A stretch of 64,000 bases of DNA from Cyanophora paradoxa CCMP329 (taxonomy: Eukaryota; Plantae; Glaucophyta), in the NCBI GenBank assembly GCA_004431415.1, contig QPMI01000039.1, positions 434,001-498,000 of the forward strand. Reading direction: 5' to 3'. The position numbers and the translations under genes are program-made. Shown here piece after piece: positions 16,386 through 63,650 of this stretch. The notes under the pieces were generated by a model, which was not told the origin of the DNA, did no database searches, and saw nothing but the letters and a program-made list of their open reading frames with translations. Position 1 is the first letter of the stretch; every line of letters starts with the position of its first letter.

Positions 16386-16605
16386 GGAAGACGTCAACGC
16401 CTGCCGGCGAATAGAGGGAGCGCACGCATTCTTAGAATCAGCTTCTTCGCCGCGGGTGCTGCACGAAGCCAAGGCTGTGGAGTTTAAAGTGTGTCCCTAC
16501 CCCCCCCTGGCCACCTTGCAAAGTCATTCTCAGCGACACAGAGTGTCAAATCCGCTGCGCGAGTCATTCAATATCGTGCGCCGTGAGCCGTGAGCCGCGG
16601 GCGCG

Positions 16606-20868: not shown

Positions 20869-21530
20869 CAAGCAAGTGGCCGCTATAGCTTTAGCTAGTA
20901 CTGCCGCCTCCGTCGCCCTTCCTCCTCCCCCCCCCTCCGCTCCCCCCCCCCTAGTACTCAGCACGTATACGTATATATATAGGGGTGTAGAGTACCTACT
21001 GTGCGTATGCTTCGGCTGGTTCTCGGTACCGTGGATGGGGTCTTAGACTCTTAATTAACTTAGCAAGCTTGGCACAAGTATACGTACGAGTACTAGTACT
21101 ACTAGTAGCTGTAGCTGGCCCAGTGGACCGCTACATAGCTAGTAGCTACTACTAAGTACTGGAGACTCAGTGGAGAGCTAGAAATATATTTAAAAATTAG
21201 AATGTACGTTGCATTTAAATTTACTACGTTTTGACCGATCGATATCCACTAATTCCCGCCATTTTGAACATTTCGAATTCCCGCCTCCTGCAAGTTGGCT
21301 ACAATTAGCGGATCCGGAGGGGTACTACGATACCAATACACCGCTCGCGCTACACAAATTTAAGCGCCCGCCCGCCCGGGGCCGCCCCTAGCTGGAATTA
21401 GCCTGGAAATATAGGCCTGCGCATGCGCATGCGCGCGAATTTACCTACTTATTATAAGTTCAATTATGCTTCGCATGCCATGATTATATATGCACGTGCA
21501 CTGAATTATGGATGCCCAGCTGCCCAGATC

Positions 21531-22928
21531 CCCTCTAGTTCAGAGAATCCTCCGGATCCAGATCCTGTGCCTCCTGCCCAGCGCCCCCGCCTCCAGTCTC
21601 CGGATCCGGCACCCCCAGTGCTTGCTCCAGCTCCTGCAGCTGCGGCTACATATGCCGAGCCCCGTCAGCCTGTTCCGACTTTGCGACGGATTCGCTCCCC
21701 TGCACCCTCACCGTCGCCACCTGCTCAGCGGCTCCGTACTTCCCTGCCCCCCCCTAGTCCTTCTCTGATACCTTCCGTTTCACGAATCCGCCGCCCCCGG
21801 TCTCCGTCGAATTCAACCTTGCCTCCCGATGCCGATCCGTCCCCTGTCCATGTGTCTCGGCGCCTGCGGCTTTCCTCTCCTGTACCTTCGGCTTCCCCTC
21901 TGGCTGTCCCGCCAGATCCACCTCGCCCGCCGGTTCCTGCATGGCCCCCTTTGATTCATGATAGTCTTGTATCAATCTTCGCTTCACCTCAACTTAGTTT
22001 ACCCTCAGTTGTTTTGCCGTCACCTCCATCAGATGCTTCATCGATGTTAGTTAGGAGCACTGGCCCCCTCCACCTTCCAGTTCCTCGTGTATTCCATGCC
22101 TTCCCTGTACCTTTGATTCCGTTCCCTTTGTCGTTAGCTCTGCCTCTTCCTCCTCCATCTCTCACTGTTAGCCCTCAGGCAGTTCCGCCTCTTTATCTTC
22201 AGCGACCGTCAGACCGTATAGTTTTTGGCAGCGAGTATTTTGTGTATGGTGACGTTCCTCGTGTGTACCCTTCTCTCTCTTCTACTTCGCTATATTTGCC
22301 TCTCCCGCCTGGTTCAGCCCCATCGTCTGCCTTCCCTGTCACTACTGGCTTGCGTTTCGCCCCTCCTCTTATACTGCCGATTCCGAGTCTGCACCCGAGC
22401 TCTGCCCCTTTCCTCGTGTCGTCCCCAGTTCCTCAGATTAGTCTTCAGCCGTCCATTGTTTTACCAACTCTACAATCTCGATTCCGTTTAGACACTCCGC
22501 CAGCTTCGACTTTCCCCTCTAGTGGTGTCCTACGTTTCGCCTCTCCTACTGTTCTACCGCCTTTGCCTCCTGCGACTACGTCTTCTAGTTCTGCTGTTAG
22601 CTCTGTCTTGTCGTCTTCGTCTAGATCTTCGTCTTCGACTGTAGTTCCTCGTGCTCGTTCTCCTTATTTGCTGCGTCCCCGTGCTCCTCGTCGTTCTAGT
22701 GTGACTAGTACTTCTGCATCGACGCCCTTGAGCTCTTCTACTCCTTCTCCTCGTGCTCGTTCTCCTTATCTTTTGCGTTCTTCTGATCGTGTCCCTTCTC
22801 GTGATCCCTCTTGATTCTGTATATATTTTGTGCTAGTTTACTGTATCTTTGATTTGTGATTGCTTTGTTGTCTTTAATATCACTACCTACGGGGGGTTCG
22901 CCCCACCGTAGTCTCTCAAAAAAAAAAA
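21531..22928 (+). mobile_element. 5'-truncated poly(A) retroelement (LINE-like 3' part) carrying a Pro/Ser-rich ORF that ends at 22814
   Basis: A 3' stem-loop (ctacgggggg-ttcg-ccccaccgtag) is followed by an A-tail. Flanking direct repeat tgcccagatc at 21521-21530 and 22929-22938. Second copy at 59340-59689. No RT domain visible. Confidence 0.7.
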
Positions 22929-23294
22929 TGCCCAGATCTAGAAGCCGAATTTTCGAGCTTCTGCTGAAGTGGGCCAGAACTTCCCAGAAGCTCGAACTCG
23001 GAAGTTAAAGGCCCAGAAGTTGGGGGCCAGAACGTACCGATCACAAGATTCACGACGTACTAGGAGTCGAGGTCCCGCGGGCCGCGGCCGAGGACACTGT
23101 AGTGACTAGTACTGTACACGCAAGTTACCCGTCTAGTACTTTCTTGGTACCAATCGTGTGGTCGGTACCGCGTGGCGGATCGCGGCCTCTTTGGAGGTTG
23201 TCTCAGGAGGCTCCGACTCGCCTCCGAGCCCTGACAACTCCTACGTATACGTATACGTATACCCTAAGAGGCTAAGACCCCGACCCCGACCATA

Positions 23295-23410
23295 TATAGT
23301 AATTAGTTCGGTCTCAAATTTGGCAGTGTACGTAGTAATTAGTGTTACCGTGGCAGTGTATGGGGTGAGGGGTACACACGGTACCCAACGACATTTTCTT
23401 AGTGTCCTGT
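23295..23410. mobile_element. MITE fragment related to 13880-13995
   Basis: Shares tagtaattagttcggtctc and the gtatgggg...ggtacac...gtaccc core. Confidence 0.5.
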
Positions 23411-24494
23411 TATAATAGCAATTACACGGTAACTTGGCAAGTTCCGAACTTCGCGCAATTCGGATCCGAAAGTTCCGCCGGGCCGGCAACTTCGAATTAA
23501 TATTACTATTCATTCCGGCCCGCGGGCCCGCCCCGGCCCGGCCAATATTAATTCCGGGCCCTCCCAAGTTTATGCTTAATTATAAGCCGCCCAACCGCGT
23601 GGTAACTTCCAATTCAATGATTGATGATCAGGTACCCGGTTCGCAGGAGCCTCGGAGTCAGGAGCAGTGATGGCATTTTTTCTAGAAACATTTCTATAAA
23701 CAATTTCGAAATCAATTTCGAAATTGTTTCCGAAAAGGTCCCGAGAGACCCCCCTAATTAGGAATTGTTTCTATTTAAGGGGGGGTACTCTTGTTTTGCC
23801 ACATTCTGCGCAAAACACGGCGAAACAACGCATTAGAATGATAGGAAACGTGATAGAAAGGTTAAATAACACGATAGGAGTCTATCGTAGACGTCTAGAA
23901 CCGGAACTCAGCCACCAACAAGGCTGGCAGGGGGTACGAGGTGTGAATTTCCCTTTCGTACTGTCGCATGTTCTGATGATCCGGAAGGCGCGAAACTGGA
24001 CAGTTACCAATAAGGAAAGCATAAGAAGGTTAAAGGGAGCGTCAGGCATCAGCAGAAGGGCCCTCGGGAGGGGCCCCTGATTTCGGAAATATTTCGGAAA
24101 TATTTCCGAAATATTTCGGAAACGTTTCCGAAATGGTCCATTTTTGGGTTAATTCGGAATACCATCAGGGAGTCGGGAGTCGGGACGTACTCCGACGGTA
24201 CTCGGGACTCCTTCAGAGTCGGAATTCGAAGCTTCGATCTAGCTTATATTTAATTATAATTTAAAAGCTTCAGCCGGCGCAGCTTCCTTTTTTTTGAGAG
24301 CTTCCGGGGATCCTCGAGCCTCGGAGCTCTGAGTCTAAGTCAGCTCCTAGAAATAGTAAGTTAGTAACACCTGCACTCAGTGACTGTGACTCTAGTCTGT
24401 GAGCTCTCGAGTCTGTGACAGTGACGCCGCACCGTGCGGCCGGCCGGCGGCCGCCGCCGGCCCGCCGGGCGTCATGCATCATGATGCATGCGCA

Positions 24495-32566: not shown

Positions 32567-35500
32567 ATGCTGCGAGCAGCCGCCGCCGCGCGGCGGGTGC
32601 GTCTCTCCGCCTCCTCCGTTATTTAGGAGCGTCTTAGAGTGCCGCCGCGCGGCTGCGGGCGTCGCGTCCCGTCCGCGCGTGCCGCCCCGAGCGCGGTTCC
32701 TGAGCCGGCCGCCGCAGGGACTGGGCCTGGGAATCGGTCGCCGTGCGTACGCGACGAACTATGGCAAGGGCGTGCTCGCCAGTGCGAAGCCGGACACGGG
32801 GCCGAGCCAAGTCCGTCCCCGCATCTCGGCCGCGCGTCCGGCGGCGGGCCGCCGTTGACGCTTGCGCAGGGACAGTTCTCTCGCGCCTACCCGGTGACGG
32901 ACCACACGTACGACGCCATCGTCGTCGGCGCCGGCGGTGCCGGCCTCCGCGCTGCCATCGGTCTCGCGGAGAATGGCTTCAACGCCGCTTGCATTTCAAA
33001 GGTGTATCCTACGCGCTCGCACACTGTGGCTGCTCAGGTGGGCGCGGCGCCCCGCTTGCCAATCTCGTCATCGCGTGAACAAGCGCAGGGCGGCATCAAC
33101 GCGGCCCTCGGCAACATGACGGAGGATGACTGGCGCTGGCACATGTACGACACGGTCAAGGGCAGCGACTGGCTCGGTCCGCAACGCACGCCGCGCTCCG
33201 CCGGGCCGCCGGACGCCCGCTGACGCCACCACCGCAGGCGACCAGGACGCTATCCATTACATGTGCAAGGAGGCCCCGAACACTGTGATTGAGCTCGAGC
33301 ACTACGGCGTTCCTTTTTCGCGTACGGACGACGGCCGCATCTACCAGCGCGCGTTCGGCGGCCAGTCGCTCAAGTTCGGCAAGGGTCCGCCGCCGGCGTC
33401 GCCGCGCCGCCTGCCGCTCTTGCGGGCAGCTAATGCGCACGGAATGCGCGCGGCAGGCGGCCAGGCGTACCGCTGCGCGGCGGCCGCGGACCGCACGGGG
33501 CACGCGATCCTGCACACTATGTTCGGGCAGGCGCTGCGGCACAACGTCAACTTCTTTAACGAGTACTTCGCTCTGGATCTGATTACGGAGAACGGTGCGC
33601 CCCGCTCTTTCTTTTCCCGCGCCCCGCTTCCTTTTCCGACGCGCGTGCGGCGTGGCAGGCGCGTGCCGGGGCGTCATGGCGCTGTGCCTGGAGGACGGCA
33701 CCCTCCACCGCTTCCGCGCGCACTACACGATCCTCGCGACCGGCGTGCGCGCGCGCCCCGCGCCGGCCGGCCGCCCGTCGCGCCGCCGACGCGGGCGCGG
33801 CGCAGGGGTACGGACGCGCATACTTCTCGGCGACATCGGCGCACACGTGCACGGGCGACGGCAACGGCATGGTGGCGCGCGCTGGCCTGCCTCTCGAGGT
33901 CCGCCATTCGATCCGCGCGCGATGCAATTTGATCGCTGGTTTGATTCGATCCGCGCTGGGCAGGACCTGGAGTTCGTGCAGTTCCACCCGACCGGCATCT
34001 ACGGGGCGGGCTGCCTTATCACCGAGGGCTGCCGCGGCGAGGGCGGCTACCTCAAGAACGCCAACGGCGAGCGCTTCATGGAGGTGGGCGTACCCCCCTT
34101 CCTCTTCCCCTCCTCCGGAGCGGCCGCCCACGCCCGTCCCGCGCCCGTCCGCAGCGGTACGCCCCGACGGCGAAGGACCTCGCGTCGCGTGACGTCGTCT
34201 CGCGCGCCATGACCATCGAGATCCGCGAGGGCCGCGGCGTCGGTACCCCACCCCCCTCCAGCCGAGCCGCGCGGGGGGAAGTCTTAGGGTCGTGTTTCCC
34301 CCGCAGGCCCCCTGAAGGACCACATCTACCTGCACCTGAACCACCTGCCCCCGGAGGTCCTCAAGGAGCGCCTGCCCGGTACCCCCCTTTCCCTCCTCTC
34401 CCCCCCTCTCTTCCCCTCTCTAACTCCCATCAGGCATCTCCGAGACCGCCGCCATCTTCGCCGGCGTTGACGTCACGAAGGTGCGCCCCGCGCTCCAAAC
34501 GGCCTGCAGCCCGCGCCAGCCAGCTAGCCGGCTCGCCGTCCCCCTGGGGTACGCCCCTCGAGCTCGCTCGCCGCGCGCAGGAGCCGATCCCGGTGCTGCC
34601 GACCGTGCACTACAACATGGGCGGCATCCCGACCCTCTACACCGGCGAGGTCGTCACCAAGAAGGCGCGCGAGCCTCGCCTCTTCCGCCCCGCCAGCCGG
34701 CCGGCCTGACTGCCGGCCCGCTGCGCGACAGGACGGCAACCCGGACTACATCGTGCCGGGGCTCATGGCCGCGGGAGAGGCCGCCTGCGCCTCCGGTGCG
34801 CCCCTGCGCCCGCGCCCGCGCCTGCGCCTGCGCCCCCTCACCCTCTGGCAGTGCACGGGGCGAACCGCCTGGGGGCCAACTCGCTGCTGGACATTGTCGT
34901 CTTCGGGCGCGCCTGCGCCCTCACCGTAGCCGAGCGCATCAAGCCCGGCGCGCCCCACAGGCACGCGCCCCCCGCCCCTTTTTTGAGTGCCCCGGGCCTC
35001 CGCGGTCGGTTCCGAGCCGCGCGCCAGGCCGCTGCCGCCGAACGCGGGGGAGGACGCGATCGCGAACCTGGACCGGATCCGCTACGCGAACGGGCCGCTC
35101 TCGACGGCCGAGGTCCGCCTCAACATGCAGCGCACCATGCAGGTGCCCCGCCGTCACCCGTCCGAGAGGGAGAGAGAGGAGGGGAGAGGTGGAGACCGGG
35201 GAATGCTGACTTGCGCCCCGCCCCGCCCCGCCCCGCCCCGCCCCGCCCCGCCCCGCGCAGGACCACGCGGCGGTCTTCCGGACGCAGGAGACCCTCGCCG
35301 AGGGTGCGCTGTACCTCCCCCCCCCTCCCCCCCTCCCCCACCCACCCAACGCGCCTCACGCTTCCCCGCAGGGTGCGTGAAGATCGACGAGGTGGCGCGG
35401 ACCTTCAAGGACGTCCGCACCACCGACCGCTCCCTCATCTGGTCCCCCCCGCCCCGGGGGCCCCTGGGAGCACCCCTCCTCCCCCGCCCTCCTCTGACCC

Positions 35501-45072: not shown

Positions 45073-46532
45073 ATGGTGGCCGCCGAGGCCGGCGGTGCAC
45101 CGTCGGCCGCTCGAAAGCGCTGGTCCATCCTGCGGGGCGCACTCCTTCGCGAGGCTGGCAGCGCGGGCGGGGGCGCCGAGGCGGATGACGTCTCCGTGCG
45201 GCGGCACGCGGGATTCGGGCTCATCCCGCGCTCGCCGGCTGCGAGCGACGGGCCGAAGGACCCGCAGTTCGAGCACATCGCTTACGAGCTCCCCGGAGGC
45301 CGGCGCCTGCTGCTGCGGTGCTCTCCAGCCCGGCATACGTCGCACGCTGTCGACGTGCCGCTGAGCTCCGAGCGCTTGCGCAGGCAGCGGGTCGCGGCCT
45401 CGCCGCAGAACTTTGCGGCTACCCTCAACGACTTCCGCGTCTCGGCGCAGAGCGGCGTCGACAACACGGGCAACGTCTGTGAGTGCACGCTAGCGCTCAT
45501 CTCCAATCCGCCGTCTTCGACCGCCGACGCACCGCACGCAGGCCTCTGGCCCGCGGAGGAGGTGCTCGCGTACTACATCGTTTCGAACCCCGCACTGTTC
45601 CGGCGCGCGCTCTCTTCGCCCTCCCGCCCCCCGGCCCGCGACGCCAGGCGCGCGCCCCTGACTCCGGATTCGAACGCGCAGCGACACGCGCGTGTGCGAA
45701 CTCGGCGCCGGAGTCGGCCTCGCGTCGTTCGCGCTGGCGGCTGCGGCGAGTCCGGCGCGGGCGTGCGCGACCGACGGCAACCCGCTCGTGGTGGAAAGTG
45801 CGCGCCGCCCTCTTGCAGGCCCGCCCTCCTAGCTTTGAACGAAAGCCGACGCCCCTGGTGCGCGCAGACCTGGCGCACAACGCGGCGGCGTGCGGGGCCG
45901 ATCTACCTCGGCCCCTCGAGGCCCGCTGCCTCCCCTGGCAGGACCCCGTACCCCCCGACATGCGCGGCGCCTTCGACTGGGTCCTGGCCGCCGACTGGCG
46001 TGCCCTGGCCTCCTACCCCCCGCCCGGTCTTCCCCTTCGCCTAATTTGCCGTACCCCCACAGCTGCTTCTTTGAGCAGTACCACGACGGGCTACTCGAGA
46101 CCGTCTGGAACCTCCTGGCGCCCTGTACCCCCCCTCCCCACTCCAGCGACGACCCCGACGAGACACCCGTCCACTACGTCGTACCCCGGGTCCGCGGCTT
46201 CTCTGTGCCCCTAGCGACCAGCCGCCGGCATCTGATTTCGCCTCAGCCGCCAGCGGCGCTTTTCGTCGCGCCGCGCCGGGGCCGCACGCTGGAGAACTTC
46301 GTGCGGCGGGCCTCGGAGCGCGGGTTCGACACCGAGCTGGTCCGCGCGCCTCGCCGCGGGCCTGGGCCCGCCCCGCGCCTTATCCAAACGCCGGCAGCGG
46401 GAGGAGTACGACGGGGAGGTGTGGCGGAGGCACGAGGCGGAGCTGCGGGCCGGGGGCGGCCGCTACGACCCGGGACTCCACTACCCGCTCCTCCTCGTCC
46501 TCACCCCCCGCCGCTTCGCCGCCACCCTTTGA
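45073..46532 (+). CDS. CAMKMT: Calmodulin-lysine N-methyltransferase
   Basis: ARKRWSILRGALL, SVRRHAGFGLI, DNTGNVCLWPAEEVLAYY, VCELGAGVGL, TDGN, FDWVLAAD, FVAPRRGRTL, YDPGLHYPLL. Confidence 0.9.
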
Positions 46533-46953
46533 TTTCTGTCCTCTCATTGCCGCTTCGCCAATGCTCGTGTGCGTTCCGCTTTTAATGCTCGTTTACTGTT
46601 AGATTCAAGAATCCAGCCTTTATTCAAAAGCCATGAGCATTCAAAAAGCGGAGCGCACTTTTAAGCATCGCTTTTTTAATGCTCGCTTTCGAAAGCGATG
46701 CCACCAGGCTTGCAAAATCCCCGTGCATGCGCACGAGTCTCCGCAGCACTTTCATTTCTGTCGACGTCCTCTTCCGCTCGTTTTGTGCTCGTTTACTGTT
46801 CATTCAACAATTCAGCTTCGCTTTCAAAATCAAAAGCGTTGCCTTCAGGCCTGCTAAAACATTTCCTCGCTATTCATGCCATGAAAATTGAGGGACTGGC
46901 GGGAGGTCATATCCTGTCGACATTAAGTCGATCGATCTAGCTATAGAATTTAT

Positions 46954-49156
46954 TTAAATTATGCGGACAGTGTTGCCCTCGAGGCGGCAGCCCGTGCAGT
47001 CGGGCGCGACGTTTACTGCGTCCTCCAGCATGCTGCTCGAGACGGCGCCCTTGCCGCCGTCTCGCACAACGATCCCGAACTTCTGGTCATGGATCCTGCA
47101 GGAGACGGGCGGTTCACGACGGGGTCTGCGCCCTCTTCGATCACGATGTCTGAGAGCGCGTTGCCGTAGACGTCGTTCGCCTCCGCGACGCCCTTCGCCA
47201 AAGTGTGGAAGAGGATGCCCGCCTGGCCGCAGTCGTGCACCGTGTTCCCTGCGCAGCACGGAATCGGTCAAACGAAGGGGCCGGGGGCGGGGCGGGGCGC
47301 CCACCGCGCAGCGTCGGGGTCGTCCCCTCGTCGCGGGCTTCGATGCCGTTGAGGCCGGCGCTGGAGACGTCGCAGCCCTCCACGACCGCCCGGCTCCCGC
47401 CCGTGATCCACACCGCACAGCTCTTCGGCGCCGTGCACCGGATCGTGATGCCCTTGACGGTCGGCGCCGCGGGGCCCGTGCATTTCAGCGTAGAGCCCTG
47501 GTCCCACTTGAGGACGGCCTCCCGCGGCCCGACGATGTGCACGTCCTTGTCCAGCGTCACCTGCTCGTTGTACCTGGCCCCAGCAGCCAATACTCAAGCT
47601 ACGGACGGCAGGGAAACAAAAGCATTCAGAAGCGCACCGGCCGGGGGCGAGGAAGATTGTCTGGCCAGGCTTGGCAGCCCGCACGGCATCCATGATCATG
47701 GTCGACGTCCCCGCTTTCGCGTATATGTCGAAGTTTCCAAGCAAAGCGGCCTGCGAGCGAACATAGGCATATTTGAGCAGCATTGAAGCGGAGGATGCCG
47801 AGAAGAAGACGCGTCAGAATTTAAGCAACATTAAGCATCATTTATTTTAAGATTTGAATTTGACGCGCCTTCTTCTCGGCGTCCTCCGCCCGCTTCCGCT
47901 GCGCCGCCGCCTCGCGCTCTGCAGCCTCGAGGCGAGTCTGATCACAAAAAATCAAGGCCTGTATCATCAGCGCACGCCGTCTCGTCGTAGTGGAGAATTC
48001 AGGCGCACGGCGAAGACGCTACGCTCTGTCTCCATTGCCCGTTCCGAAGTGGTTGCGCGCTCCGATGCAGCCGAAGCCTGCGAAATCTAACTTCTGCATG
48101 CGCAGAAATCCGATACGAAACAGTGCAGAAATCCGATACGAACCTTGGCTTCGGCGTCCTGGGACCGGCGCTGCTGCATGGCTGCCTCTGCCCCCGCAGC
48201 AGCCAGACGCCCCTGCGCGAAATTTAACGCGAAATTCAAGTTTGGTGAGATCCGTTCGTGATCCAATGACCATATACAGCAATATCGATCCGATGCATTA
48301 CGTAATATGACTAATTTGAGTTCGATCATGCAAAGCACTGAAGTGCACGCACCGCGAGGTCGCGACGCTCGGCATCCGCGATGGCGGCCTGGTCCTCGGC
48401 CGCAGCTGCACGCTCAGAGGCAGATGTGGCCTGCATTTAATTTGCGCATTTCGGAATCAGCTCGCCGAGTCGAGAAAAGCGGAAGGCGTAAATCTATACT
48501 AGTGCATAGTATTCGCACCGACTTCGCCGCCTCCTCTGCGGATTTCTCGGCCTGCGCGGTCGGTTTCAGTTTTCCGAAGCGGCGATAAGGCTCGAAAATA
48601 TCAAACTCGAATTTTCTTCCATGGCGTGGCACATGCACATAACGCGAGCGATTGCGCGGGTTTCGCAGCTCTAGCCAGAATCGCACCGCCTTGGCCTTTT
48701 CCTCGGCGGCGGTGACGAGCTCAGAAGTCATCGCGGCCCGCGCGGCGGCCTGATACACGTAAGAGCGACATCGATCGACATCGAAAATCGCACCGCCATC
48801 ACGTCCTGCGCGACGGCCCCAACGCTCTTGCACTGCAGGGTAAGCGCAGCACGCGCGATAGCGTCGAACAAGAACCGAAATCAGCGGACCGCATTGATCG
48901 CGGCAAGGATCGCATCGATATCGCGATCGGTGTCCTGGAGAACTCGAGTTGAGGCCTGCGAAAATGGCTCAACGCGCGCACAAACTCCGCGGCGCGAAAT
49001 TTGAAATCGCGACAAGCACCTGACGTGCGGGACTAGAGCCCTCCGGATCCGCTGTACCTGCGCGCGCAAGTCGTCGTCGTCGCTCGCGATCGCAAGCTTA
49101 ATTTTATAAGCTGAGAATACACTCACCGACGCTGAAGGCCAGGCGCTTCTCGACAT
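46954..49156 (-). pseudogene. Coiled-coil + right-handed beta-helix (PbH1, FBXO11-like repeats) paralog 1, probably damaged
   Basis: NTVHDCGQAGILF...NDVYGN repeats. It lacks one repeat unit and the last splice donor (about 47115) that its paralogs have. Start approximate. Confidence 0.6.
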
Positions 49157-49750: not shown

Positions 49751-52146
49751 CTAGCGGACGGTGTTGCCCTCGAGGCGGCAGCCGGCGCAGTCGGGCGCCA
49801 CGTCGATCGCCTTCTCCTCCCCGCAGCCGTGGCGCTCCAGAACGTTCCCCGCGATGGTCCCCTCGCCGCCGTCTCGCACGAGGACGCCCCACTGCTGGTC
49901 GTGGATCCTGGGCAAAGTCGGGCGAGAAGGAGGGAGGGAGGAGGAGAAGGGGGAGGAGCTCGAATCGAAGGCGCACCGGTTGCCCTTGACGGCGGGGTCT
50001 GCACCCAGCTCGATGTGCACGCCCACCTCGGCGTTGCCGTACACGTCGTTGGCCTCGACCGTGCCCCGCCCGCTCTCAAGCACGTGGATGCCGGCCGCCT
50101 TGCCGTCGTGGACCTTGTTGCCCCGCACGACGGGGTCCGCGCCGGTCTGGATCGCGATGCCCGCGCTCCCGTTGCCGTAGACGTCGTTCGCCTCCGCGAC
50201 GCCCTTCGATGACTCGTGGAAGAGAATACCCGCCTGGCCGCAGTCGTGCACCCAATTATCTGGGCAGTGCAGAATCGGTCAAAACATTAAACGTTAACGG
50301 AAGGCCGCGGGCAGATCTAGAGGGCCGGGGGCGCCCACCGCGCAGCGTCGGGGCCGTCCCCTCGTCGCGCACTTCGATGCCGTTGAGGCCGGAGCTGGAG
50401 ACGTCGCAGCCCTCCACGACCGCCCGGCTCCCCCCTGAGATCCACACTGCACAGCTGTTCGGCGCCGTGCACCGGATCGCGATGCCCTTGACGCTGGGCG
50501 CTGCGGGACCCTTGCAGCGAAGCGTGGTGCCCTTCGAGCACTCGAGGACGGCCTCCCGCGGCCCGACGATGTGCACGTCCTTGTCCAGGGTCACCTGCTC
50601 GTCGAACCTGGCCCGCGCAGCCGGCCCGCGGCCGACAATTGCAATTAGTCAAGAAGCTTAGGTTGAAAATATTCGATAGACGTCAACAGCGGTTGAATGT
50701 TTCGAAGCTTGTGGGTGCGCATGCGCACCGGCCGGCGCCGAGAAGGATAATTTGGCCGGGCTTGGCGGATCTCACGGCATGCATTATTGTGGTCCCCGCT
50801 GCAGGTTTGACATAAATGTCGAAGTTTCCAAACAAAGCGGCCTGCAATGCGAGCCGCGGCATATTCGAGTTCAGAGCAAAAATCAAGTACGCCATAAGCT
50901 TCCGACGCGCCTTCTTGTCTGCCTCGTCCGCGCGCTTCCGCTGCGCCGCCATCTCTTGCTCCGCAGCCTCGAGACGGCCCTGATATCGAGCGTGAGAAGG
51001 TATATATATATTCCTTAGTACGCAAGATCTAGACGCGGAATCGCCATGAAGCGGGTAAGTATTTAATTCAGGCTGAATTCAGAACTCACAGCGAGGGCAC
51101 GACGCTCAGCTTCCGTGAGGGCGGCTTGGTGCTCCGCGGTGGCGGCGCGCTCGGAGGCAGCGGCAGCCTGCCGTAGAAAATTCGAACTTGACGCATAAAC
51201 TGAAATATTAAAGAGAGAGGGCGGCGGTCGTCGAACCGCACCGCCTTTGCCGCCTCCTCGGCTGATTCCTCGGCCTGCAAGGCTGGTTATATCGGAGCTA
51301 AAGTGCGAAAATTGTCCCAACTATAAATATATACGATTCAAAATCGCAGCCTCTCAGCCTCTCACCGCCTCCGCCTTTTCCATGGCGGCGACGAGCTTCC
51401 TTTGCGCCGTCGCTTCGCGCTCCGCGGCTTCGAGGCGCTCCTGTGCATGTTTGAATAACTTCAAGTATTTCGGTTTTTTATATAGCCCAGCCCATGGTCT
51501 GATATGAGAGTGGCACCGCCTTGGCTTTTTCCTCGCGATCGGTGGCGATCATGAGCTCTGAAGCTACCGCGTCCTTCACAGCGGTCCGCACGCCCTGACA
51601 CGAGCGAAATAGAAATTGCCCGAATTTCACGAGCGCGGTAGCTATAGATCTAGACCACATGCATCAATATCCGCACCGCCAGCTCCGAAGTCATGGCGTC
51701 CCGCGCAGCGGCCCGCACGCTCTAACCCAGATCATTAGCGGCGAAAAACAAGCGCAAATCGCAGATCATTAGCGGCGAAAAACAAGCGCAAATCGGCCGA
51801 CCTCGCTGATAGTAGCAAGGAATGCGTCGGAATCGTCTGGAAAAGGCGAGCTCGAGGCCTACAAGAAACGTTTTCGAAATGGACCGGATCAGCGCGCGAA
51901 AAGTAAACAGAGGTGCGGCGTGCGGCGCAGCAGCAGGCCTATATCTAGGCGCACCTGGTGCGCAGCTTCCGCTCCGCGATCGATCTCTGCAGCTGGCTCT
52001 GCGGCTGCGTATGTAATTTAATGTTTGCGCGGGTCGACGTCGGAATCAATTTACAGCGCGCGCGTCATCGATATCGATCATGATCAGAGTCGCGAACCGG
52101 GCGAATCATGATCCGCGTCGCGTGCGCGCACGATCTTGAGCACCAT
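49751..52146 (-). CDS. Coiled-coil + right-handed beta-helix (PbH1) protein, paralog 2
   Basis: GNKVHDGKAAGIHVLESGRGTVEANDVYGN repeats, VTLDKDVHIVG, and upstream EAAE-rich exons. Start approximate. Confidence 0.7.
51728..51795. repeat. Perfect 34-bp tandem duplication
   Basis: cagatcattagcggcgaaaaacaagcgcaaatcg x2. Confidence 0.9.
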
Positions 52147-53649: not shown

Positions 53650-56367
53650 CGATGGTTCCCGCATCGCGATCGTGATCCAGTAGGCTATAGCTAGCTAAAG
53701 GAAAATACGCGTGCGCACCCGCTCGAAGACTATGGGGTCGAACTCGCGAGTCGCCGAACCCGACTCGATCCGCAGGTGGTACTGGCAACCGAATCCAAGT
53801 TAGCGCGGCTTTGATTTGGGGGCAGGGGGGTTTTCGAAATAGGCGCTTGTAGAATTTGCGGCACTGCGGCACGGAGAGCGTGTTCCGCACCGTGCTGCCG
53901 GCGATGAACTGCAGCAGGGCGCGCGTACGGCTGGTGCCCTTCGGAAGTGGGGGGATCTCTGCGAGCCAGGTTATTGGTGAGCCGAGCGTCCCTCTTGCGA
54001 TTGCGAGCCGCGGTTTGAAGAGAGGTCGGGGCGCACTGAACCGCAGCGTCTGCGAGTCGGGGATAGACGGCTCGAGGGCGGGGACCCTCTGGTTGCTGTT
54101 GCTCGGATCGACGATGAAGATGTTCACATTCTTGTTCGCCTGCGAGGTGCGAAATAATTATATAAGCATGACCCGATTGCTGGTCATGAGACTCTCGGAA
54201 TTGCGGACCGGCAAATTTGAACCCTTGATGATGACGAAGTCCGTGCTCCCGGTCTGCGCCACGTGCACGCGTACGACGTTTATTTCCCAGTCCCTGTCCC
54301 CGGAAGGGCGGAAATGAAAGCTATGTCGGACTCGCCTCGGCCGGCACTTGAAGCTCCCTCCCAGCCAGCGAGATCCACGTGGCAACCGATCCGTCGGATT
54401 CCTGCTCAAGATCGATTCTTTGTTAGTGTCGAAGGAGCGCTATGAGCTCGCGATCGAGCACCAGCTGCAGATATATTATTTATGTATAATTGCATATAAT
54501 TATAAGGCGCTGCTCCAAAACTCAAAAAGCAATGTATTCGAAAGCCCGAGGCACCTGTACCGGCCGTGTAGAAACCCCGCCGGAATTCGAAATATTGACC
54601 TGTCGATCCCACGCGTACGAGACTGAGCAAATTTGAATATATATATATATATATTAAGATGCTAAGATGTCAGAGGTCATTAAGATGTCATGCATCCGCA
54701 TATGATCACAATTGCAAGTCAGAGTTAACGTTCGGCCGACAGTGACCATAATTGATATATAACTTCCTCGGATTCGAAGCCTTTGCAGAGGCGAGGGCTG
54801 GCCGGGCCATTTCTCACCGTCGTGTTGCTGAAGATAAGCTGGACGATCTCGGGCCGGGGAGGGCTCGCGGTCGGGGACGGGCTGCGAAACACGCGCGCGC
54901 AACAGTCAACGACGGTGGATCCCCGGAAGGCGCCAGCCGGGATGGATGTCCACGGGGGGCGCGCACCTGGGGGTCGGGGTCCGGATGGTTGGGTCCATGC
55001 AAACGCCGCTCACGTTGCGGAAGCCGGCGGTCTCGTTGCAGAAGCAGACCGGCAGCTTGTACAGGGTTGTCCCGTAGAAGCCGCTGTCGCGACTAGATGC
55101 TGTAGACGTCTGATAGGGCCGCACGGCCTCGATCGGCTGATTATGTGTGCAGGGGGCGACGCAGAAAACGTCCGGAGTGTTGGATCCGGAAGCGTTGTAG
55201 TACCCGAGTACGTATCCGAGGCCCGCAGGGCAGAGGCAATCCGGAGGCGCAGCGGGCCATACGCCCATGGACAGCTCCGTCCCCGAAGGACTGATTGCCA
55301 CGCTCTCAGGATTAATTCTCTTTTCGGACCGTAGATATTTTGTATTGAAGATAGGGTACAGCCCATCGCCTAGCATGGATTGCGTCAAGAGTTGTAATAC
55401 AAATTTGATAAACGTTTGATAAACGTAATTAATATAATAAGTAACGCGATCGCGCACCGCTTGAACAAGAGCGCATGCAGAAGTCCTTGTTGGTGTAATT
55501 AGACGTTGGTGGGCCGTTCGTATAGTTGAATATCCGATTCGCGGCCTTGCTCTTCCGACCGGGTGAGTTCTCGAACAGGTATCCATCGGGGAGGCTCGTG
55601 TTGCAGAAGCAGCGTATGAAGTTGGCTTCATCCAAAGGAGCCCACTGGTTGACACTTCCTTGAATATGGTCACCCGGTTCGCAGTTTCCTACCGGGGATG
55701 CAGCCGGCCTGAAATCTGGGTCCGACTCGGGATTCCGGAAGAGGCAGTAGGAATCTCCCTTGTACGTCACAAGTTTCGTGTCCATCCAGTTCGAGAGGCA
55801 GCCGCACCGCGGGGTCGTCGCGCCAGCGGGAAGATACCTTTCGAAACGGCCAGTTGGAGCGAGGCTGTACGTTTTTCCAAGTTCTTGGAAATAAACGTCT
55901 GTGTACACGGAAGACTCGTCGTTGCAGAGGTTCTCTTCGCAGTAGAGCTGGCCACTGACATTGACCAAATAATCGCTGTACCTTGTGACAAGTGAAACTG
56001 AACTTGGCAGGGTGCGGCTGCGACAGAAGCATGCAGGGACACCGTTGCTGATAGGGATGGGCCCAACGCTCGGGCAGACGCTGCTGTTCGAGATGCAGTA
56101 CGACTTTGCTGCAAGCGACCCAATAGATGCAGTGGGTGGTCCTATGTCATGATTATTCCCAGAGTTTGTCATTCTTGGGCTGAATACGACGCCTCCAGCT
56201 GCCGTGCAGTCATTGTTCAAGACGCAGCCCGAGGTGCCCGACGTGTTGCGAGAATCGATCTCAACCGGCAGGTTGGTGCACACGGCGCGCGCCGGCTGGA
56301 GAACGCTGCTGGCGGTCGCGAGAGCCACGAGCGCGACGAGGAGGGCGCTGAAGCCGCGCGCCTCCAT
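53650..56367 (-). CDS. Secreted cysteine-rich protein; 3' end uncertain
   Basis: Signal peptide MEARGFSALLVALVALATAS, repeated CFC/CxC modules, many N-x-S/T sites and a Pro/Thr linker. GT-AG introns join the ORFs in frame. GC content is lower than in neighbouring genes. Confidence 0.65.
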
Positions 56368-56687
56368 GCTATAATACATCGCTGCCGCAGGACTGCGCGG
56401 CGCCGGAAGCTAGTTAGCCCGGCGGCCTGGATCCGGCCCGGGATTACTGCAAGTTAAAACTAGGCTGCAACTACGACTCGTAGTTCTACTACCGGTAGGC
56501 TAGGCTAAAGGTTCTAGCTACTAGTGTCACAGTGTAACGGTAGACGTCGGTAGTATAACCGCCGCCGCCGACGCGTGACGGGGACGGTCGTGCCGGCGGT
56601 GCCGCAGTCTAGATCTGCCGCAGTGCCGCTGTCTGCGGCACTGCGGGCCTGTACAGGCTGTACCGTAGTACTTGTTTACGACTCTAC

Positions 56688-56941
56688 TACCGTAATCCAG
56701 GAAAATATGACGGTCAAATTTATGTCGTTTGAAATCCGGACCCTTCTCTATGAGAAATATGACGCCCCCAAATTATGTCGGCATGAAATTTTCGGGCTTG
56801 TATGGGGCGGTAAATTGGGGGGGTAGCACTAAACACGCCCTACTATGTCGTCCTCAAATTATGTCGTCATGTCAAGTTTTCGGCGACATAATTTGGGGAT
56901 GACATAATAAAATGCAGACCTTAATATTCTGGATTACGGTA
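56688..56941. mobile_element. MITE, TA|CCGTAA family
   Basis: Perfect taccgtaatccag / ctggattacggta ends; reverse homologue of 12486-12754. Confidence 0.9.
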
Positions 56942-57234
56942 GTACGCCTGGCACAGTGGCGCGGGCACTGCGGCAGAGACTGCCGCAGAGTACAAGTCTC
57001 AGAGTCTGCGGCCGGGCAGCTGCAGGCTGCAGCCTGCAGGCTGCAGCGGCAGTGCTGCGGAGCCTGCGGCACTAATTTAACTCAGTAAGTGACTGCGGCA
57101 CTTTGACTGCGGCAGACGCCGGCAGTCACTGAGTGCCGCAGTGAGTGCAGCTTAAGTTAAGCTTGCACTGTTGGCAGTCTGTTGCACAGCCTTGCAGGCA
57201 ATTGCAAAAGTTGCAGCCAAGCTGAGCCAACTAG

Positions 57235-57483
57235 TACCGTAGAGCAGGAAAATAGTGGGCAGGAAAATAGTGGGCCGGAAATTGGGGGAAAGTGGCTTGT
57301 CAGCTAGCTAGATCATCAGCCTAGATGGGGCGGTAAATTTAGGGGGTACTGTATGGGGCAGCTTACTAAGTTAGCAGCAGGGAAATACTGGAGCCCGAAA
57401 TTAGTGGACTGAGTCAAATTTTCGGTCCACTAATTTCGGGCTCCACTAATTTTCTGCGTCCAGTATTTTCCTGCTCTACGGTA
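57235..57483. mobile_element. MITE, TA|CCGTAGAGCAGG family
   Basis: Perfect 20-bp inverted ends taccgtagagcaggaaaata / tattttcctgctctacggta. Confidence 0.9.
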
Positions 57484-58085: not shown

Positions 58086-58333
58086 CAGAATATTAAGGTC
58101 TGCACTTTATTACGTCGATCGTCCCCAAATTATGTCGCCGAAAACTTGACATGACGACATAATTTGGGGACGACATAGTAGGGCGTGTTTAGTGCTACCC
58201 CCCAAATTTACCGCCCCATACAAGCCCGAAAATTTCGTGCCGACATAATTTGGGGATGTCATATTTCGCATAGAGAAGGGTCGGTTTTTATAACGACATA
58301 AATTTGACCGTCATATTATTGTGTTTTACGGTA
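58086..58333. mobile_element. MITE, TA|CCGTAA family, left TIR lost
   Basis: Collinear with 12495-12754; ends gtgttttacggta. Confidence 0.85.
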
Positions 58334-58390
58334 TGCATGGCGCCGGCCGGGCCGCGGCCCGCGGGCCGCGGTCCGCGGCGCTCCCGGAGT

Positions 58391-59008
58391 TAGGCCTGCG
58401 GCTTGCCGTCAAGCGCTTGAGCCAAAGCTCAAGCCGGGCTGGGCGGTCAAGCGCTTGACCGGCTTTTGGCCGGCTCAAGCCGGCTCAAGCCCTGGCCCCG
58501 GGGGGGGGGCAGGGGAGGGGGGGATCGGCGCGCGGGGGTACTTCGACGCAGCTGCAGCGAATTCGAAGCCGGCGCCGCGCGGCACGCGCGCGCGCGTGCC
58601 TGCGATCGATGGCATCGCGCGCAAACGTTAACGTCGGACCGGATGTAGATCTAGAAGTCTGATCATGAAGAGCGTGCAGGTATCATCGATATCGCGCCGG
58701 CGCCGACGGCCGGCGTCGCGAGCTCCAAGCTTGCCGAGTCGATATATTATCAGCTCATGATCAGTGTTTAGATGTGTTTCTTTCGAATTCAAAACAAAAT
58801 AAGCTCTAGCTAGGGGCTTGCGGCGCTGAGGGCTTGCGGAAGTGTACCCCCCCTTCGGCTTGCCTCAAGCCGGGCCAAGCGCTTGACCCGGCCAAGTGGC
58901 CAAGCGCGCTTGTCCGGGCCGGCCGGCCGGCTTAGCTTGGCTTGGCCGCGAGCGCCCTGGGCTTGGCTTGACTTGAGCCGACTTTCTGGCGGTCAAGCCG
59001 CACCCCTA
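58391..59008 (-). mobile_element. Non-autonomous hAT-type element with 8-bp target-site duplication
   Basis: taggcctgcggcttg ... caagccgcacccta. TSD CCCGGAGT at 58383-58390 and 59009-59016. Homologous to 13107-13410. Confidence 0.9.
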
Positions 59009-59339
59009 CCCGGAGTCCGCGCACGCGGGCCGGGGCCCCATCATCATGGCATCATGGCATGCAGCCATGATGCAGGCGGCGGTAACGTACGAACTTCGAA
59101 TTCGGAATTTTTGCCAGCGTTTATACTAGTAATTTCGACAATGTAATGTACTAGTATACGTATATATAGCAATTCGCCGACTCGGCGAATTAATATTAAA
59201 CCTTTGTTTCGAATGAGGGGTACAGTACCAGGCCCGTCTATGGCGAAGTTAAAATTGTTAAATTGACTCGCGGCGCGGCGTCTCGAGCTCGCGCCGCGCG
59301 CGAGTCGCGCGCCGGCGCCATCATGATCATGTCAATTCG

Positions 59340-59689
59340 CTGCGTCCCCGTGCTAGCTATATAGCGCTCCTCGTCGTTCTAGCTGCATATAGTGTGACTA
59401 GTACTTCTGCGTCGACGTCGAGTACGTCCTTGAGCTCTTCTAGCTCCTTTATATTAGCTTCTCCTCGTACTCGTTCTCCTTATCTTTTGCGTTCTTCTAG
59501 ATCTGATCGTGTCCCTTCTAGATCTCGTGATCCCTCTTGATTCTGTATTTTGTGCTACCGTAGTACTTTACTGTATCTTTGATTTGTGATTGCTTTGTTG
59601 TCCTTAATATCACTACCTACGGGGGGCCCGGGTTCGCCCCACCGTATACGTATCAGTATATCATAGTATACGTAGTCTCTCAAAAAAAA
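59340..59689 (+). mobile_element. Short 5'-truncated copy of the poly(A) retroelement, riddled with palindromic micro-insertions
   Basis: Collinear with 22671-22928, including the A-tail. Confidence 0.9.
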
Positions 59690-60399
59690 CATATATAGCT
59701 ATAGTCGATCTGTATAATGTAACTTATAATGTAAGTTTAAGAGTCAATTAAAGACTGTAATTATATAACTCGTTCCATACAATCTACCGTAGTACCCCCC
59801 AACATCCGCCCCTTACAAGCCCAAATTGTTTAGTCTGTTAATTTGGGACTCTGTTATTTCGCCTAAGATTTTATACCCTGTTAATTAACGTTAACGGGCT
59901 GTTAAAATACGTGCGCTTGACGCGGCACTGACGCCGTGACGGCGGCTCTCACGACTCTCGACTCTCGAGCCCTTGAACCAAGCGACGAGCGCTCTCTCGA
60001 GCCCTTGAAGCAAGAACTCGAGCTGGGTTTTTTCGCCTTCAAGTTCGGTTCAACAGTGTGTTACAGTGAATGTTTTTAACTTGTACAATTGTATACGTAC
60101 GCCACGGTACGCGTAGCGGTAATGAAAAACCTCTGTTTTCTAATTGGCCAACATTGGCAGTCTCTCAAAAGCCTGGCGCTAGCTATATAGCGGGGAGGGG
60201 GGGGGGAGGAGGAGGAGGGGGGCGGGCGAAGTTTAAGCCCCCCCTCCGGGGATCCCCCCCCTGCTTGATAGCGCCCACGTGCACGCACGTGCACTGCGGT
60301 GCGAGCGCCGCGAGCTTGAGGGCCGGACATGTACAGGGCTAGCGGAGCCTCGGATCCGGAGGGCCTTCCAGGCCAAATGCAAATGGCAGCTTCGAGGCT

Positions 60400-61770
60400 C
60401 GGCTCGGTCCGGCGGGGCAGGGGCCGGCGCCCGGCGGGGCCGGGGCCGCGAGCGCCGCGGGGTCCGCGAGCTGCAGGCTGCAGTTGGCCATGGGTGCTAG
60501 CGGGCGGCCCTCCAGGGGGCGAGCTCGAGGCGGGGGCGGGGCCGGCGGGGCCGGGCCGGGGCCTGCGGCGGCTCGCCGAGGCAGAGGAAGGAGCGCCAGA
60601 GCTCCCCCAGGAGGCCGCCCCCCGGGGTGCACTTCTCCCCCCGCCCGCCCCCGGGCCCCGCGCCCCCGGCCCCCGCTGCAGCCCCGGCCCGGGCTCTCCG
60701 GCCGCAGCCCCAGCGACGCCAGCGCCATCGGCTCCACCCTGCGCCCCTCGCCCGCCGCCCGCCCCGCGCCCCGCCCCGCGCCCCTCCGCGAGCCGCCGCG
60801 CCTTCTCCTCCACCCGGCCCCGCACCTGCCCCGCCCCGCGCCCCTCGGACCGGCGGCCGCGGGCCGGGATCGGATGGGATCGGGTTTGGGCGGACCTGGA
60901 CGCGGGCAAAGCGCCAGCCGTGCTCGACCTCGGCGATGCGGGCGGCGCCGTCCACGGCCGCCTCCTTGCCCCCGGCGCCCCCCAGGCCCAGGATCGCCCG
61001 GCACTTGGCCGCCAGCGCGGCGCGGAACTCGGGGCTCACCGCCCCGCCGTCGCCGACGCGGGGCCCGCCCCGCCCCCGCACCGGCCCCGGCCCCGCCCCG
61101 GCCCCGGCCCCGGCCCCCGGGCCGAGGCGCTGGAGGACGTAGCGGGCGGCCTCGGCGCGCTGCTGGCCGGCCCGCGCGGCGGCGGCGCCGGAGGGGCGCT
61201 TGGGCTTGGCCCGGCGGGCGGCGCCGGCTCCGCATATCCAGCAGCATATCCAGCATCTGCTGCCCCGCCCCGCCCCGCCTCAGAGCCGGCGGGGCGGGGG
61301 CGGGGGCCGGAGCGGGGGCGGGGGCCTGGAGGCGGAGGACTTCGGCGGCGGCGGGGCTCTCCGGGCACGTCACCGCCACCGTCTCCCGGTTCTGCCCCCC
61401 GTCAACGCGGCGCGGGGCGGGGCGGGGGAGGAGGGAAGGGGGGTACCTGGAAGAGGACGCGCCCCTCGCGGCGGACGACGTACTGGATGGAGAGGGGCGG
61501 CGGGCCCGCCCCGCCCCGCCCCCGCCCCCGGCGGGCCCCGCACGATGAACCCCGCGATGGCCTGCGGCGCGCGTGAGGCCGGAGGGGCGCGGGGGCGGGG
61601 GGCGGGGCGCGGGGGCGGGCCTCGCCGGTGCGGGCGACGGGGACGAGGGCGGGGGCCGGGGGGCGGGGCAGCTCGAGGGTGTAGGGGGGCGAGACGGCGA
61701 GCTCGAAGAGGAGCGTCGCGGAGTAGAGGAACGAGGCGAGCGCCACCGCCTCCAGCTTCTGCTGCATCTC
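60400..61770 (-). CDS. Hypothetical multi-exon gene or gene fragment
   Basis: GC-rich exons with C-rich introns on the minus strand (MQQKLEAVALASFLYSATLLFELAVSPPYTLEL...; AEVEHGWRFARVQ). Ends uncertain. Confidence 0.4.
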
Positions 61771-62250: not shown

Positions 62251-63650
62251 TCACTCATGAAAAACAAAACCGGCAGTTGCGTCCATACCGTCGACGATAT
62301 ACGTATTGCCGTCGAGATGGCAGCACGTGCAGTCGGGGCCGACGTCGATCGCGTCCTTCAGGCGGGGGCCGAGCCGCTCCAGCGCGTTCCCCGTCACAGC
62401 GCCCTTGCCGCCGTTGCTGACGAAGATGCCCCACTGCTGGTCGTGGATCCTGCGCAGAGGCAGCCGTACACGTCCACGTGAGATGGCCGCGGGGTGGGGT
62501 TAGAGGGCGATCATGAGGGAGACATAGAAGAGTACAATTGCAAGCTTAAGCTGAAGGGCGTACCGGTTGTCCAACACGACGGGGTCCGCCCCGGTCTTGA
62601 TCTCGATGCCCGAGCGCGCGTTGCCGTAGATGTCGTTTCCCAAGAACGTGCCCCGCCCCTTCTCCCGCACGAGGATGCCGCAGGCCTCGCCGTCGTGGAC
62701 CTTGTTGCCCCGCACGAACGGGGCCGCGCAGGTCTGGATCGCGAAGCCGCCGAACCCGTTGCCGTAGACGTCGTTGCACTCCGCGACGCCCTTCGCCGAT
62801 TCATGGAAGAGGATGCCGGCCTGGCCGCAGTCGTGCACCGTGTTCCCTGCGCACGCGGAATCGGTCAAACAGAGGGCCGGGCGCGGGGTTGGGGCGCCCA
62901 CCGCGCAGCGTCGGGGCCGTTCCCTCGTCGCGAACTTCGATGCCGCTCAGTCCCGCACCGAACACGTTGCAGCCCTCCACGACCGCCCGGCTCCCGCCCG
63001 CGATCCACACCGCAGAATTCTTCGTAGCTGCGTTTCGGATCGTGATGCCCTTGACGCTGGGCGCTGCGGGATCCTCGCAAAGTAGCGTGACGCCTTGGTC
63101 CCACTCCAGCACCGCCTCCCGCGGCCCGACGATGCTCACATCCTTGTCCAGAACCACCTGCTCGTAGTACCTGGCGCCCGCGGACGACAATATTAATTTC
63201 GCCAAAACGGCGACCGCCAGCAAACGCCATAGCTATAGCATTCAAATGTACATATACACGTGCACCGGCCGGGGCTGAGGAGGATAGTCTGCCCGGGCTT
63301 GGCGAATCGCACGGCATCCATAATCGAAGATCCGGGGCCAACATTAATCTCAAATGTGGCGTCCTGCGATCCAGTCATCGTTGTCACGTGCACGGAAAAT
63401 TAAATTGAATATCTCGATATTGATTGCACTTGACGCGCCGTAATTTCTACATCCTCAACGGGTCGCGGCCTCCACTGCATCGCAGCCTTTCGCTCAGGAT
63501 CCGTAATCTCAATTGCAAGGATCCCCTGCTTCAAAGGCGTCGCATTCTCTGCGTCCTCATTCCGCTTGCGCTGAACGGCTGCCTCTCGCTCCGCAGTCTG
63601 GAGGCGATCCTGAAGAGAAGAGCAGTGAGCAATACGAAGTACGTATACCG
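62251..63650 (-). CDS. Right-handed beta-helix (PbH1) protein, paralog 3; 5' end uncertain or outside the window
   Basis: GNTVHDCGQAGILFHE...GNKVHDGEACGILVREKGRGTFLGNDIYGN; same intron positions as the paralogs. Confidence 0.7.

Follow-up and report, generated by a model that had tools for sequence, protein, structure and literature searches.

In a 64,000-nucleotide (nt) stretch of the Cyanophora paradoxa CCMP329 genome (GenBank assembly GCA_004431415.1, contig QPMI01000039.1, forward-strand positions 434,001 to 498,000; hereafter the window, numbered from its first letter), two copies of a non-coding retroposon differ mainly by small palindromic insertions, which lie almost entirely in the copy near 59 kb and not in the copy near 22 kb. 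These differences are real, they are insertions, and they follow two rules. Under rule R1, a word X becomes X-rc(X)-X, where rc denotes the reverse complement, with a gain of 6 nt; under rule R2, X becomes X-C-rc(X)-G-X, with a gain of 8 nt; X is always 3 nt long. The same grammar recurs in the low-GC DNA of the window, with a strict 3-nt unit, coupled junctions, an identical reading on both strands and scars nested within scars. The scars are most likely transposon excision footprints, set apart by their exact grammar, density and recursion, and no published match was found for their density and regularity. In the specific form favoured here, to which a probability of about 0.5 is assigned, they would be left by a transposon with a 3-base-pair (bp) target duplication and C...G ends that excises through flank hairpins.

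The two copies were compared by pairwise local alignment of 22666-22925 (22-kb copy) with 59335-59689 (59-kb copy), which have approximately 257 bp in common. Four or five substitutions separate them, the count depending on the alignment at 59556: four lie at 22669/59338, 22718/59411, 22755/59469 and 22873/59603, and the fifth is a G/C difference at 22836 that enters if the insert at 59556 is read as R2. The gaps fall in 12 blocks at nine or ten loci of the 59-kb copy, 99 nt in total, and the 22-kb copy has one private insert, a 4-nt TATA at 22820-22823. The 59-kb copy has lengthened from 260 to 355 bp (+37%) at a divergence of no more than 2%, and this pair records at least 15 insertion events against at most five substitutions. 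An earlier annotation of the window, made from the letters alone (the first-pass annotation), had described few substitutions and many insertions in the 59-kb copy, and the present alignment bears this out; the clean cases that it named, at TCT (twice), at GGG, and at GTA on both ends of a 28-nt insert, are exact to the letter. Its description of the inserts as local inverted copies also holds. The middle unit is exactly rc(X), and when the 99 inserted letters were permuted among the inserted positions (n = 5,000), no shuffle reached the observed number of palindromic hexamers in the 59-kb copy (20 against 6.1 ± 1.4) or of R1/R2 motifs (nine against 1.1).

The two rules were fitted by a forward search with both rules exact, and by reverse peeling, which was also run with one mismatch allowed. 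The forward search reproduced only the three clean 6-nt inserts. Exact reduction was obtained at four of the nine insert loci, namely 59496, 59517, 59624 and, with one G/C change, 59556 (Table 1). Reverse peeling removes R1 scars at TCT (twice), GGG, GTC and GTA and R2 scars at TAC and TAT, seven exact events that together make up 46 of the 99 inserted nucleotides. As in a retained target duplication, a single ancestral X is represented by X...X in the derived copy at TCT (twice), GGG, GTC and GTA. Peeling also removes a ACTAGTACT scar that is present in both copies and is therefore older than either. The compound inserts (59352-59365, 59380-59389, 59418-59427, 59443-59457 and the 28-nt core) are palindrome-rich and are not reducible to the ancestor by the exact rules; extra steps, such as the gain of TA or of a 4-nt palindrome, are needed. 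The first-pass annotation had explained the insert at GCT by nested events, and it can be read in that way, but the exact rules do not reproduce it.

Table 1 Positions in the window of the two retroposon copies and of the scars and inserts that distinguish them
Feature	Position	Strand	Basis or remark
Whole 1398-bp pyrimidine-rich non-coding poly(A) retroposon	21531-22928	+	Ends in stem-loop, TCTCTC, A11
Left 10-bp target-site duplication TGCCCAGATC	21521-21530	+	Immediately 5' of the element
Right 10-bp target-site duplication TGCCCAGATC	22929-22938	+	Immediately 3' of the A run
Homologous 3' segment of the young retroposon, near-ancestral reference	22666-22925	+	Alignment
TA to TATATA insert, private to the 22-kb copy	22820-22823		Slippage or a 2-nt version of R1 possible
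Older 5'-truncated poly(A) retroposon copy	59335-59689	+	Alignment; compared with the 22-kb copy, 12 blocks of inserts (99 nt); target duplication gone
14-nt compound insert	59352-59365		Readable as R1(GCT), R1(TAG) and an extra TA; exact rules alone fail
10-nt palindrome-rich insert	59380-59389		Not explained by the rules
R1 scar GTC-GAC-GTC, GTCGACGTC	59411-59419		Within a compound 9-nt insertion
1-nt and 11-nt inserts	59443-59457		Not explained by the rules
R1 scar TCT-AGA-TCT, TCTAGATCT	59496-59504		Ancestor TCT; alignment, exact rule
R1 scar TCT-AGA-TCT, TCTAGATCT	59517-59525		Ancestor TCT; alignment, exact rule
R2 scar TAC-C-GTA-G-TAC, TACCGTAGTAC	59556-59566		R2 reading requires the G/C difference at 22836
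R1 scar GGG-CCC-GGG, GGGCCCGGG	59624-59632		Widens the loop of the 3' stem-loop
28-nt compound insert	59643-59670		Two GTATACGTA plus one R2 scar; ~14 nt beyond the exact rules
GTATACGTA, R1 word GTA, on either end of the 28-nt insert	59644-59652 and 59666-59674		Letter-exact
R2 scar TAT-C-ATA-G-TAT, TATCATAGTAT	59659-59669		Inside the 28-nt insert

The 22-kb copy is part of a recently inserted element in which the source sequence is still visible, and the 59-kb copy is an older, dead, 5'-truncated retroposon that has gained small insertions since landing. The hallmarks of a retroposon are present (an A11 tail, a 10-bp duplication and the 5' truncation of the 59-kb copy), and read contigs join the family elsewhere at other truncation points (loose ends at 59582). 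The two copies of the 10-bp duplication of the 22-kb element match perfectly, and no target duplication is left around the 59-kb copy. Just 5' of the tail, the insert-free sequence forms a stem-loop with a 10-bp stem and a UUCG loop (free energy, dG, of -17.2 and z-score of -4.5), which the GGGCCC and 28-nt inserts disrupt in the 59-kb copy. The only R1 motif in 22666-22925 is the ACTAGTACT at 22704-22712 that is common to both copies, and 22001-23000 is the least palindromic kilobase of the window, with 11 palindromic hexamers compared with 45-84 in most other non-coding kilobases. Purines make up 48% of the inserts and 32% of the common backbone; inserts are predicted to be purine-richer because half of each insert is an inverted copy of the pyrimidine-rich strand. 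In a separate three-copy family (near 47, 50 and 62 kb), segments with AACGTTAAC and AGATCTAGA are likewise private to one copy.

The polarity given in the first-pass annotation, derived insertions rather than deletions, is thus upheld by the 10-bp duplication, the intact stem-loop, the purine balance, insert-free read contigs (see below) and the private inserts of the three-copy family. The opposite polarity, in which the palindromes would be ancestral and would have been lost in the 22-kb lineage by precise deletion between 3-bp direct repeats, is very improbable. Slippage between the X copies would convert X-rc(X)-X into X with mechanical ease, and slippage over hairpins has been reported to eliminate inverted triplications (10.64898/2025.12.26.696596). 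However, a young element with a perfect target duplication would have had to undergo twelve precise deletions, the insert-free state is the one that forms the clean 3' stem-loop, the inserts are purine-balanced within a pyrimidine-rich backbone, and other copies are likewise free of the TCTAGA inserts.

The locus was also checked in contigs from four public runs (X1, X5, X6 and X20) of the years 2012, 2019 and 2024. From 58984 these match the window without differences and at single-copy depth, to 59498-59499 in X1, X5 and X6 and to 59417 in X20. The matches span the first insert loci, including base 59499 of the first TCTAGA insert, and to this point the inserts are present in public reads; the later inserts (59500-59689) are backed by the assembly, and no single continuous contig spans that interval in the returned tables. 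A loose contig end at 59498 goes on as a form without the TCTAGA insert, and in three runs two contigs apiece extend past 59519 in an insert-free form. Over 54100-56713 there are no differences in X1, X6 and X20 and two 1-nt gaps in low-depth contigs of X5, and the four runs look like one strain. An assembly, polishing or library artefact, in favour of which the missing continuous contig across 59500-59689 can be cited, is the least plausible explanation considered here: runs made independently in 2012, 2019 and 2024 agree with the assembly up to and including base 59499, and the motif follows a strict grammar and is depleted in GC-rich coding DNA.

The grammar was counted in the 26.5 kb of low-GC DNA of the window, with expectations from dinucleotide shuffles. 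R1 occurs 288 times against 13.3 in shuffles (22-fold) and R2 69 times against 0.5 (approximately 130-fold), and the reverse spacer order, G...C, occurs 12 times against 0.8. The unit length is strictly 3, as words of length 2, 4 or 5 perform no better than control patterns. Hybrids with a spacer at one junction only are at background, with approximately 40 of each kind across the whole window compared with 487 R1 and 105 R2 motifs. Other spacers, longer spacers and footprints of the form X-t-rc(t)-X are not enriched, and both R1 and R2 read alike on the two strands. Scar density is 11-12 per kb where GC content is below 65%, compared with 3.5 per kb in GC-rich coding DNA, and is uneven at the kilobase scale, ranging from 1 to 31 per kb.

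R1 scars make use of 63 of the 64 possible words, with an approximately ten-fold bias: GTA/TAC, GAC/GTC, AGA/TCT and GAA/TTC are favoured, and AGC/GCT, CCA/TGG and CGC/GCG are avoided. Measured against the background share in low-GC DNA, AGC/GCT stands at 0.08 and both GTA/TAC and GAC/GTC at approximately 2. The bias could reflect a target preference or unequal scar stability.

For R2, approximately 45 different words lack TA, a result that bears on the insert at 59556, for which a mariner-type footprint, TA-CCG-TA, plus 3 nt is an alternative. The window contains MITEs (miniature transposable elements with inverted repeats) of the Tc1/mariner (Stowaway) type with TA duplications and CCGTA ends, so that TA-CCG-TA is an expected footprint, and this 7-mer is present in the insert. 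The R2 reading is nevertheless preferred. Provided that TAC stood in the ancestor at the place of the TAG in the 22-kb copy, the whole 8-nt insert is R2 with X = TAC. With so many words free of TA, the general grammar is not a mariner footprint. The Stowaway-like MITEs, with TA target duplications and ends starting CCGTA, lie at 56690-56939 and 57237-57481, the 57-kb element having a 22-nt terminal inverted repeat, and related copies lie at 12473-12755 and 58086-58333. The commonest R2 scar in the window, TACCGTAGTAC, with nine occurrences when both strands are counted, overlaps TA-CCG-TA.

Iterative peeling of the low-GC DNA removed 333 scars, or 8.1% of its bases. Thirty-seven of them were nested, being exposed only once an inner scar had been removed; approximately 28 are expected if events strike random positions, old scars included, and 0.2 if the process is non-recursive. 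The recursive character proposed in the first-pass annotation therefore agrees with the counts. Its wider claims, that the process builds the palindrome-rich intergenic DNA and that insertions outnumber substitutions, stand in part: intact scars form a visible share of the low-GC DNA and insertions do prevail in the 22-kb/59-kb pair, but this dominance is seen in that one pair, and in the window's remaining repeat pairs substitutions predominate. No clean R1 or R2 indel was found between those other pairs. The pair 56688-56931 and 58333-58086 differs by 15 substitutions and four small indels; the pair 15153-16388 and 20494-19265 is 95% identical and differs by 22 substitutions and eight small indels, none of them R1 or R2. 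The latter is a 1.25-kb inverted duplicate of approximately 80% GC, presumably coding. The 12:1 asymmetry of inserts between the two retroposon copies arises largely because the 22-kb copy lies in a young retroposon.

If scars decayed only by point substitution, a density of 11 per kb would require, as a rough estimate, an R1 rate of approximately 10% of the per-base substitution rate. The R1 rate at the 59-kb locus is about ten times this steady-state estimate, a mismatch which implies either that most scars are lost to later scars and deletions or that events cluster locally. Pack-CACTA elements have been reported to insert closely spaced, in clusters, in a paper that also cites local hopping of other cut-and-paste elements.

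The transposon, the hairpins and the joining step of the proposed origin are what we infer from these products. A cut-and-paste transposon with a 3-bp target duplication and 5'-C...G-3' ends, similar to CACTA/En-Spm elements, would enter at X to give X-element-X. At excision, both flanks would be sealed as hairpins, with the cut placed either flush with the end of the element (R1) or one base into it (R2); in the second case the terminal C of the element would stay at the hairpin tip of each flank. Opening of the hairpins three bases from the tip would yield 3' tails ending in rc(X) or X, and the two tails would anneal over three complementary bases before being sealed. Repeated rounds would also strike old scars, so that palindromes would accumulate. 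The strict 3-nt unit points to a 3-bp stagger set by an enzyme, as in target-site duplication, and the C-then-G order on one strand, the background level of hybrids and the strand symmetry suggest two identically processed ends of a single break. Such an order would not be expected of one polymerase switching template twice. Of the two causes offered in the first-pass annotation, DNA-transposon turnover and a repeat-degrading defence, the former fits best, given the strict 3-nt word, the coupled C and G spacers and the strand-symmetric grammar.

Flank hairpins have been shown for Muta1/Mutator, hAT and Transib elements (PMC5499845). The scars resemble the footprints of the Coen-type hairpin model, those of hAT, Mutator and Transib/RAG, and the P nucleotides of V(D)J recombination, in that the target duplication is kept on both sides, the ends are treated symmetrically and what is added is the reverse complement of the flank next to it. 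In contrast, the known footprints are variable in length and often degraded, whereas the scars come mostly as two exact products, with all 3 bp of the duplication inverted, and in intact form occupy approximately 8% of the low-GC DNA. Elements of the CACTA superfamily have variable 3-bp target duplications and CACT(A/G) ends (PMC4423477); the variable 3-bp duplication and ends that start with C and finish with G match the 3-nt unit and the R2 spacers, and the insertion clusters of Pack-CACTA elements could explain the clustered scars.

Several observations weigh against this origin. A search of 17 open reading frames (ORFs) of the window against Pfam gave no transposase domain; the only matches were FAD_binding_2 at 33126-33932 and a weak Vps16_N. 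When the window was scanned for CACT(A/G) ends, no pair flanked by a 3-bp duplication came to light, and the strongest inverted-repeat pair (4030/6329) lacks a duplication. Nor did comparison of the window's repeat pairs reveal any site at which one copy holds an element and another a scar. In the 59-kb copy, roughly half of the inserted letters lie outside both rules, even with one mismatch allowed. The event-to-substitution tally of the retroposon pair, accumulated within 260 bp, would need a very high local rate of insertion and excision, or local hopping. Members of the CACTA superfamily are not known to form such hairpins from biochemical work. The regularity of the scars would also be unusual beside the short, variable CACTA footprints of plants: those of Tpn1 are reported as 3-5 bp, compared with the 6 or 8 nt added here, and rice shows heterogeneous excision footprints, of which only 8 of 94 are 'perfect' (PMC4423477).

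Two further scans concerned elements with other ends. A scan for C...G ends with a 3-bp duplication gave six matches in GC-rich palindromic sequence, which are regarded as chance; among them are 20767-23530 and 58373-60460, which happen to enclose the two retroposon copies. A general scan for terminal inverted repeats with target duplications yielded little but GC-rich noise.

The same grammar, symmetry and 3-nt unit would result if no element were involved and a nuclease, possibly a domesticated or trans-acting transposase, made 3-bp-staggered breaks at arbitrary sites whose hairpin-sealed ends were rejoined, writing R1 and R2 directly. This would be a true endogenous mutational process building intergenic DNA. 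It is in keeping with the failure to find an element in the window, with the very high ratio of events to substitutions at the 59-kb locus and with the uneven density of 1 to 31 scars per kb. However, the fixed C...G spacers find their simplest explanation as terminal bases of an element and are left without a reason by a free nuclease, and no candidate enzyme was identified; break and repair of this kind is considered unlikely. The broader proposition that the non-coding DNA owes its mutations mainly to self-overwriting insertion, through a hairpin-forming nuclease or a transposase acting in trans with no element resident at each site, is a tentative one and somewhat unlikely to be correct. 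Much of the intergenic DNA would then have been written de novo from 3-bp seeds, with at least three events per substitution at the 59-kb locus.

Template switching during replication or repair is doubtful as a source. In form, X-rc(X)-X is an inverted triplication (duplication-inversion-duplication, DUP-INV-DUP), and small inverted triplications and palindrome expansions are known from yeast rad27 mutants and from cancers (10.64898/2025.12.26.696596; PMC5677150). The FEN1/rad27-linked events, and those of the type described by Loytynoja and Goldman, share with the scars both this form and the writing of palindromes by copying of the opposite strand. Their units, by contrast, are approximately 160-184 bp and variable, with spacers and junction microhomology (in 10.64898/2025.12.26.696596, approximately 184/160/184 bp, the spacer being 30 bp and the junction 6 bp), whereas the scars have a constant 3-nt unit and either no spacer or one fixed base. 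Neighbouring unit lengths are not enriched, and a C at the first junction and a G at the second would be required every time, yet hybrids are at background. Insertions templated by DNA polymerase theta (Pol theta) likewise vary in length, being copied from neighbouring sequence after priming by microhomology. Template switching of either kind, which the first-pass annotation had listed as a known source of palindromic additions, does not predict the fixed 3-nt unit and the coupled C...G spacers.

A repeat-degrading defence similar in effect to repeat-induced point mutation (RIP), the second cause offered in the first-pass annotation, is scarcely credible, although the heavily struck copy is indeed a repeat. 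Its sister at 22 kb, a young retroposon, is almost untouched, clean scars are missing between the copies of high-copy MITEs that were compared, and unique non-coding DNA has scars throughout as well. RIP produces repeat-targeted C-to-T transitions, and the four or five substitutions found here are too few to reveal any transition bias.

No published description of R1 or R2 scars was found, either in the Cyanophora paradoxa genome papers, which mention neither palindromes nor such scars, or elsewhere. If the scars are excision footprints, as favoured here, the genome records cut-and-paste transposition at the resolution of single events, with approximately 12-15 intact scars per kb of non-coding DNA, and a measurable share of the intergenic and probably of the intronic DNA consists of scars, intact ones making up approximately 8% in this window. 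The two exact products would then report on the cleavage chemistry of a superfamily with a mechanism that is not established, and would point to flank hairpins and to cleavage either flush with the element boundary or one base into the element. Should the process require no element, the scars would be a new mutational signature. The findings bear on genome growth, on the palindrome richness of this genome and on the modelling of indels when repeats are aligned or dated.

The 22-kb retroposon itself encodes no reverse transcriptase, as its sole long ORF has no Pfam match; this ORF (463 amino acids, 21423-22814) is regarded as a stop-free artefact of the CT-rich strand. With no coding ORF, the element is non-autonomous. 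An Rfam search gave no match, a pattern scan of metagenomes found no further copies of the family, and a protein search with the CT-rich pseudo-ORF found none, itself included. The summed contig depth over 59419-59615 is 23,530, compared with approximately 66 for single-copy DNA, which suggests a family of hundreds of copies or one very abundant sub-segment.

Tandem arrays of 6-bp palindromes, (TGCGCA) x2.8 at 21418-21434 and (TACGTA) x3.5 at 23242-23262, could be the expected product of repeated R1 at one word; slippage could also extend such arrays. Two low-GC stretches, 55001-57000 and 46001-49000, have very few scars (1-3 per kb), and long ORFs without a Pfam match lie in the scar-poor stretches at 54909-55688 and 55432-56409 on the minus strand. 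These stretches may be young insertions or unrecognised coding DNA. The three-copy family is gene-like (47115-47780, 50126-50870 and 62713-63330), with conserved blocks, variable linkers and ORFs without a Pfam match, and the private inserts with AACGTTAAC and AGATCTAGA belong to its 50-kb copy. At 58624, one contig in each of two runs, at approximately single-copy depth and from either an allele or a paralogue, is shorter by 6 nt; the difference adjoins a AACGTTAAC scar and fits neither R1 nor R2.

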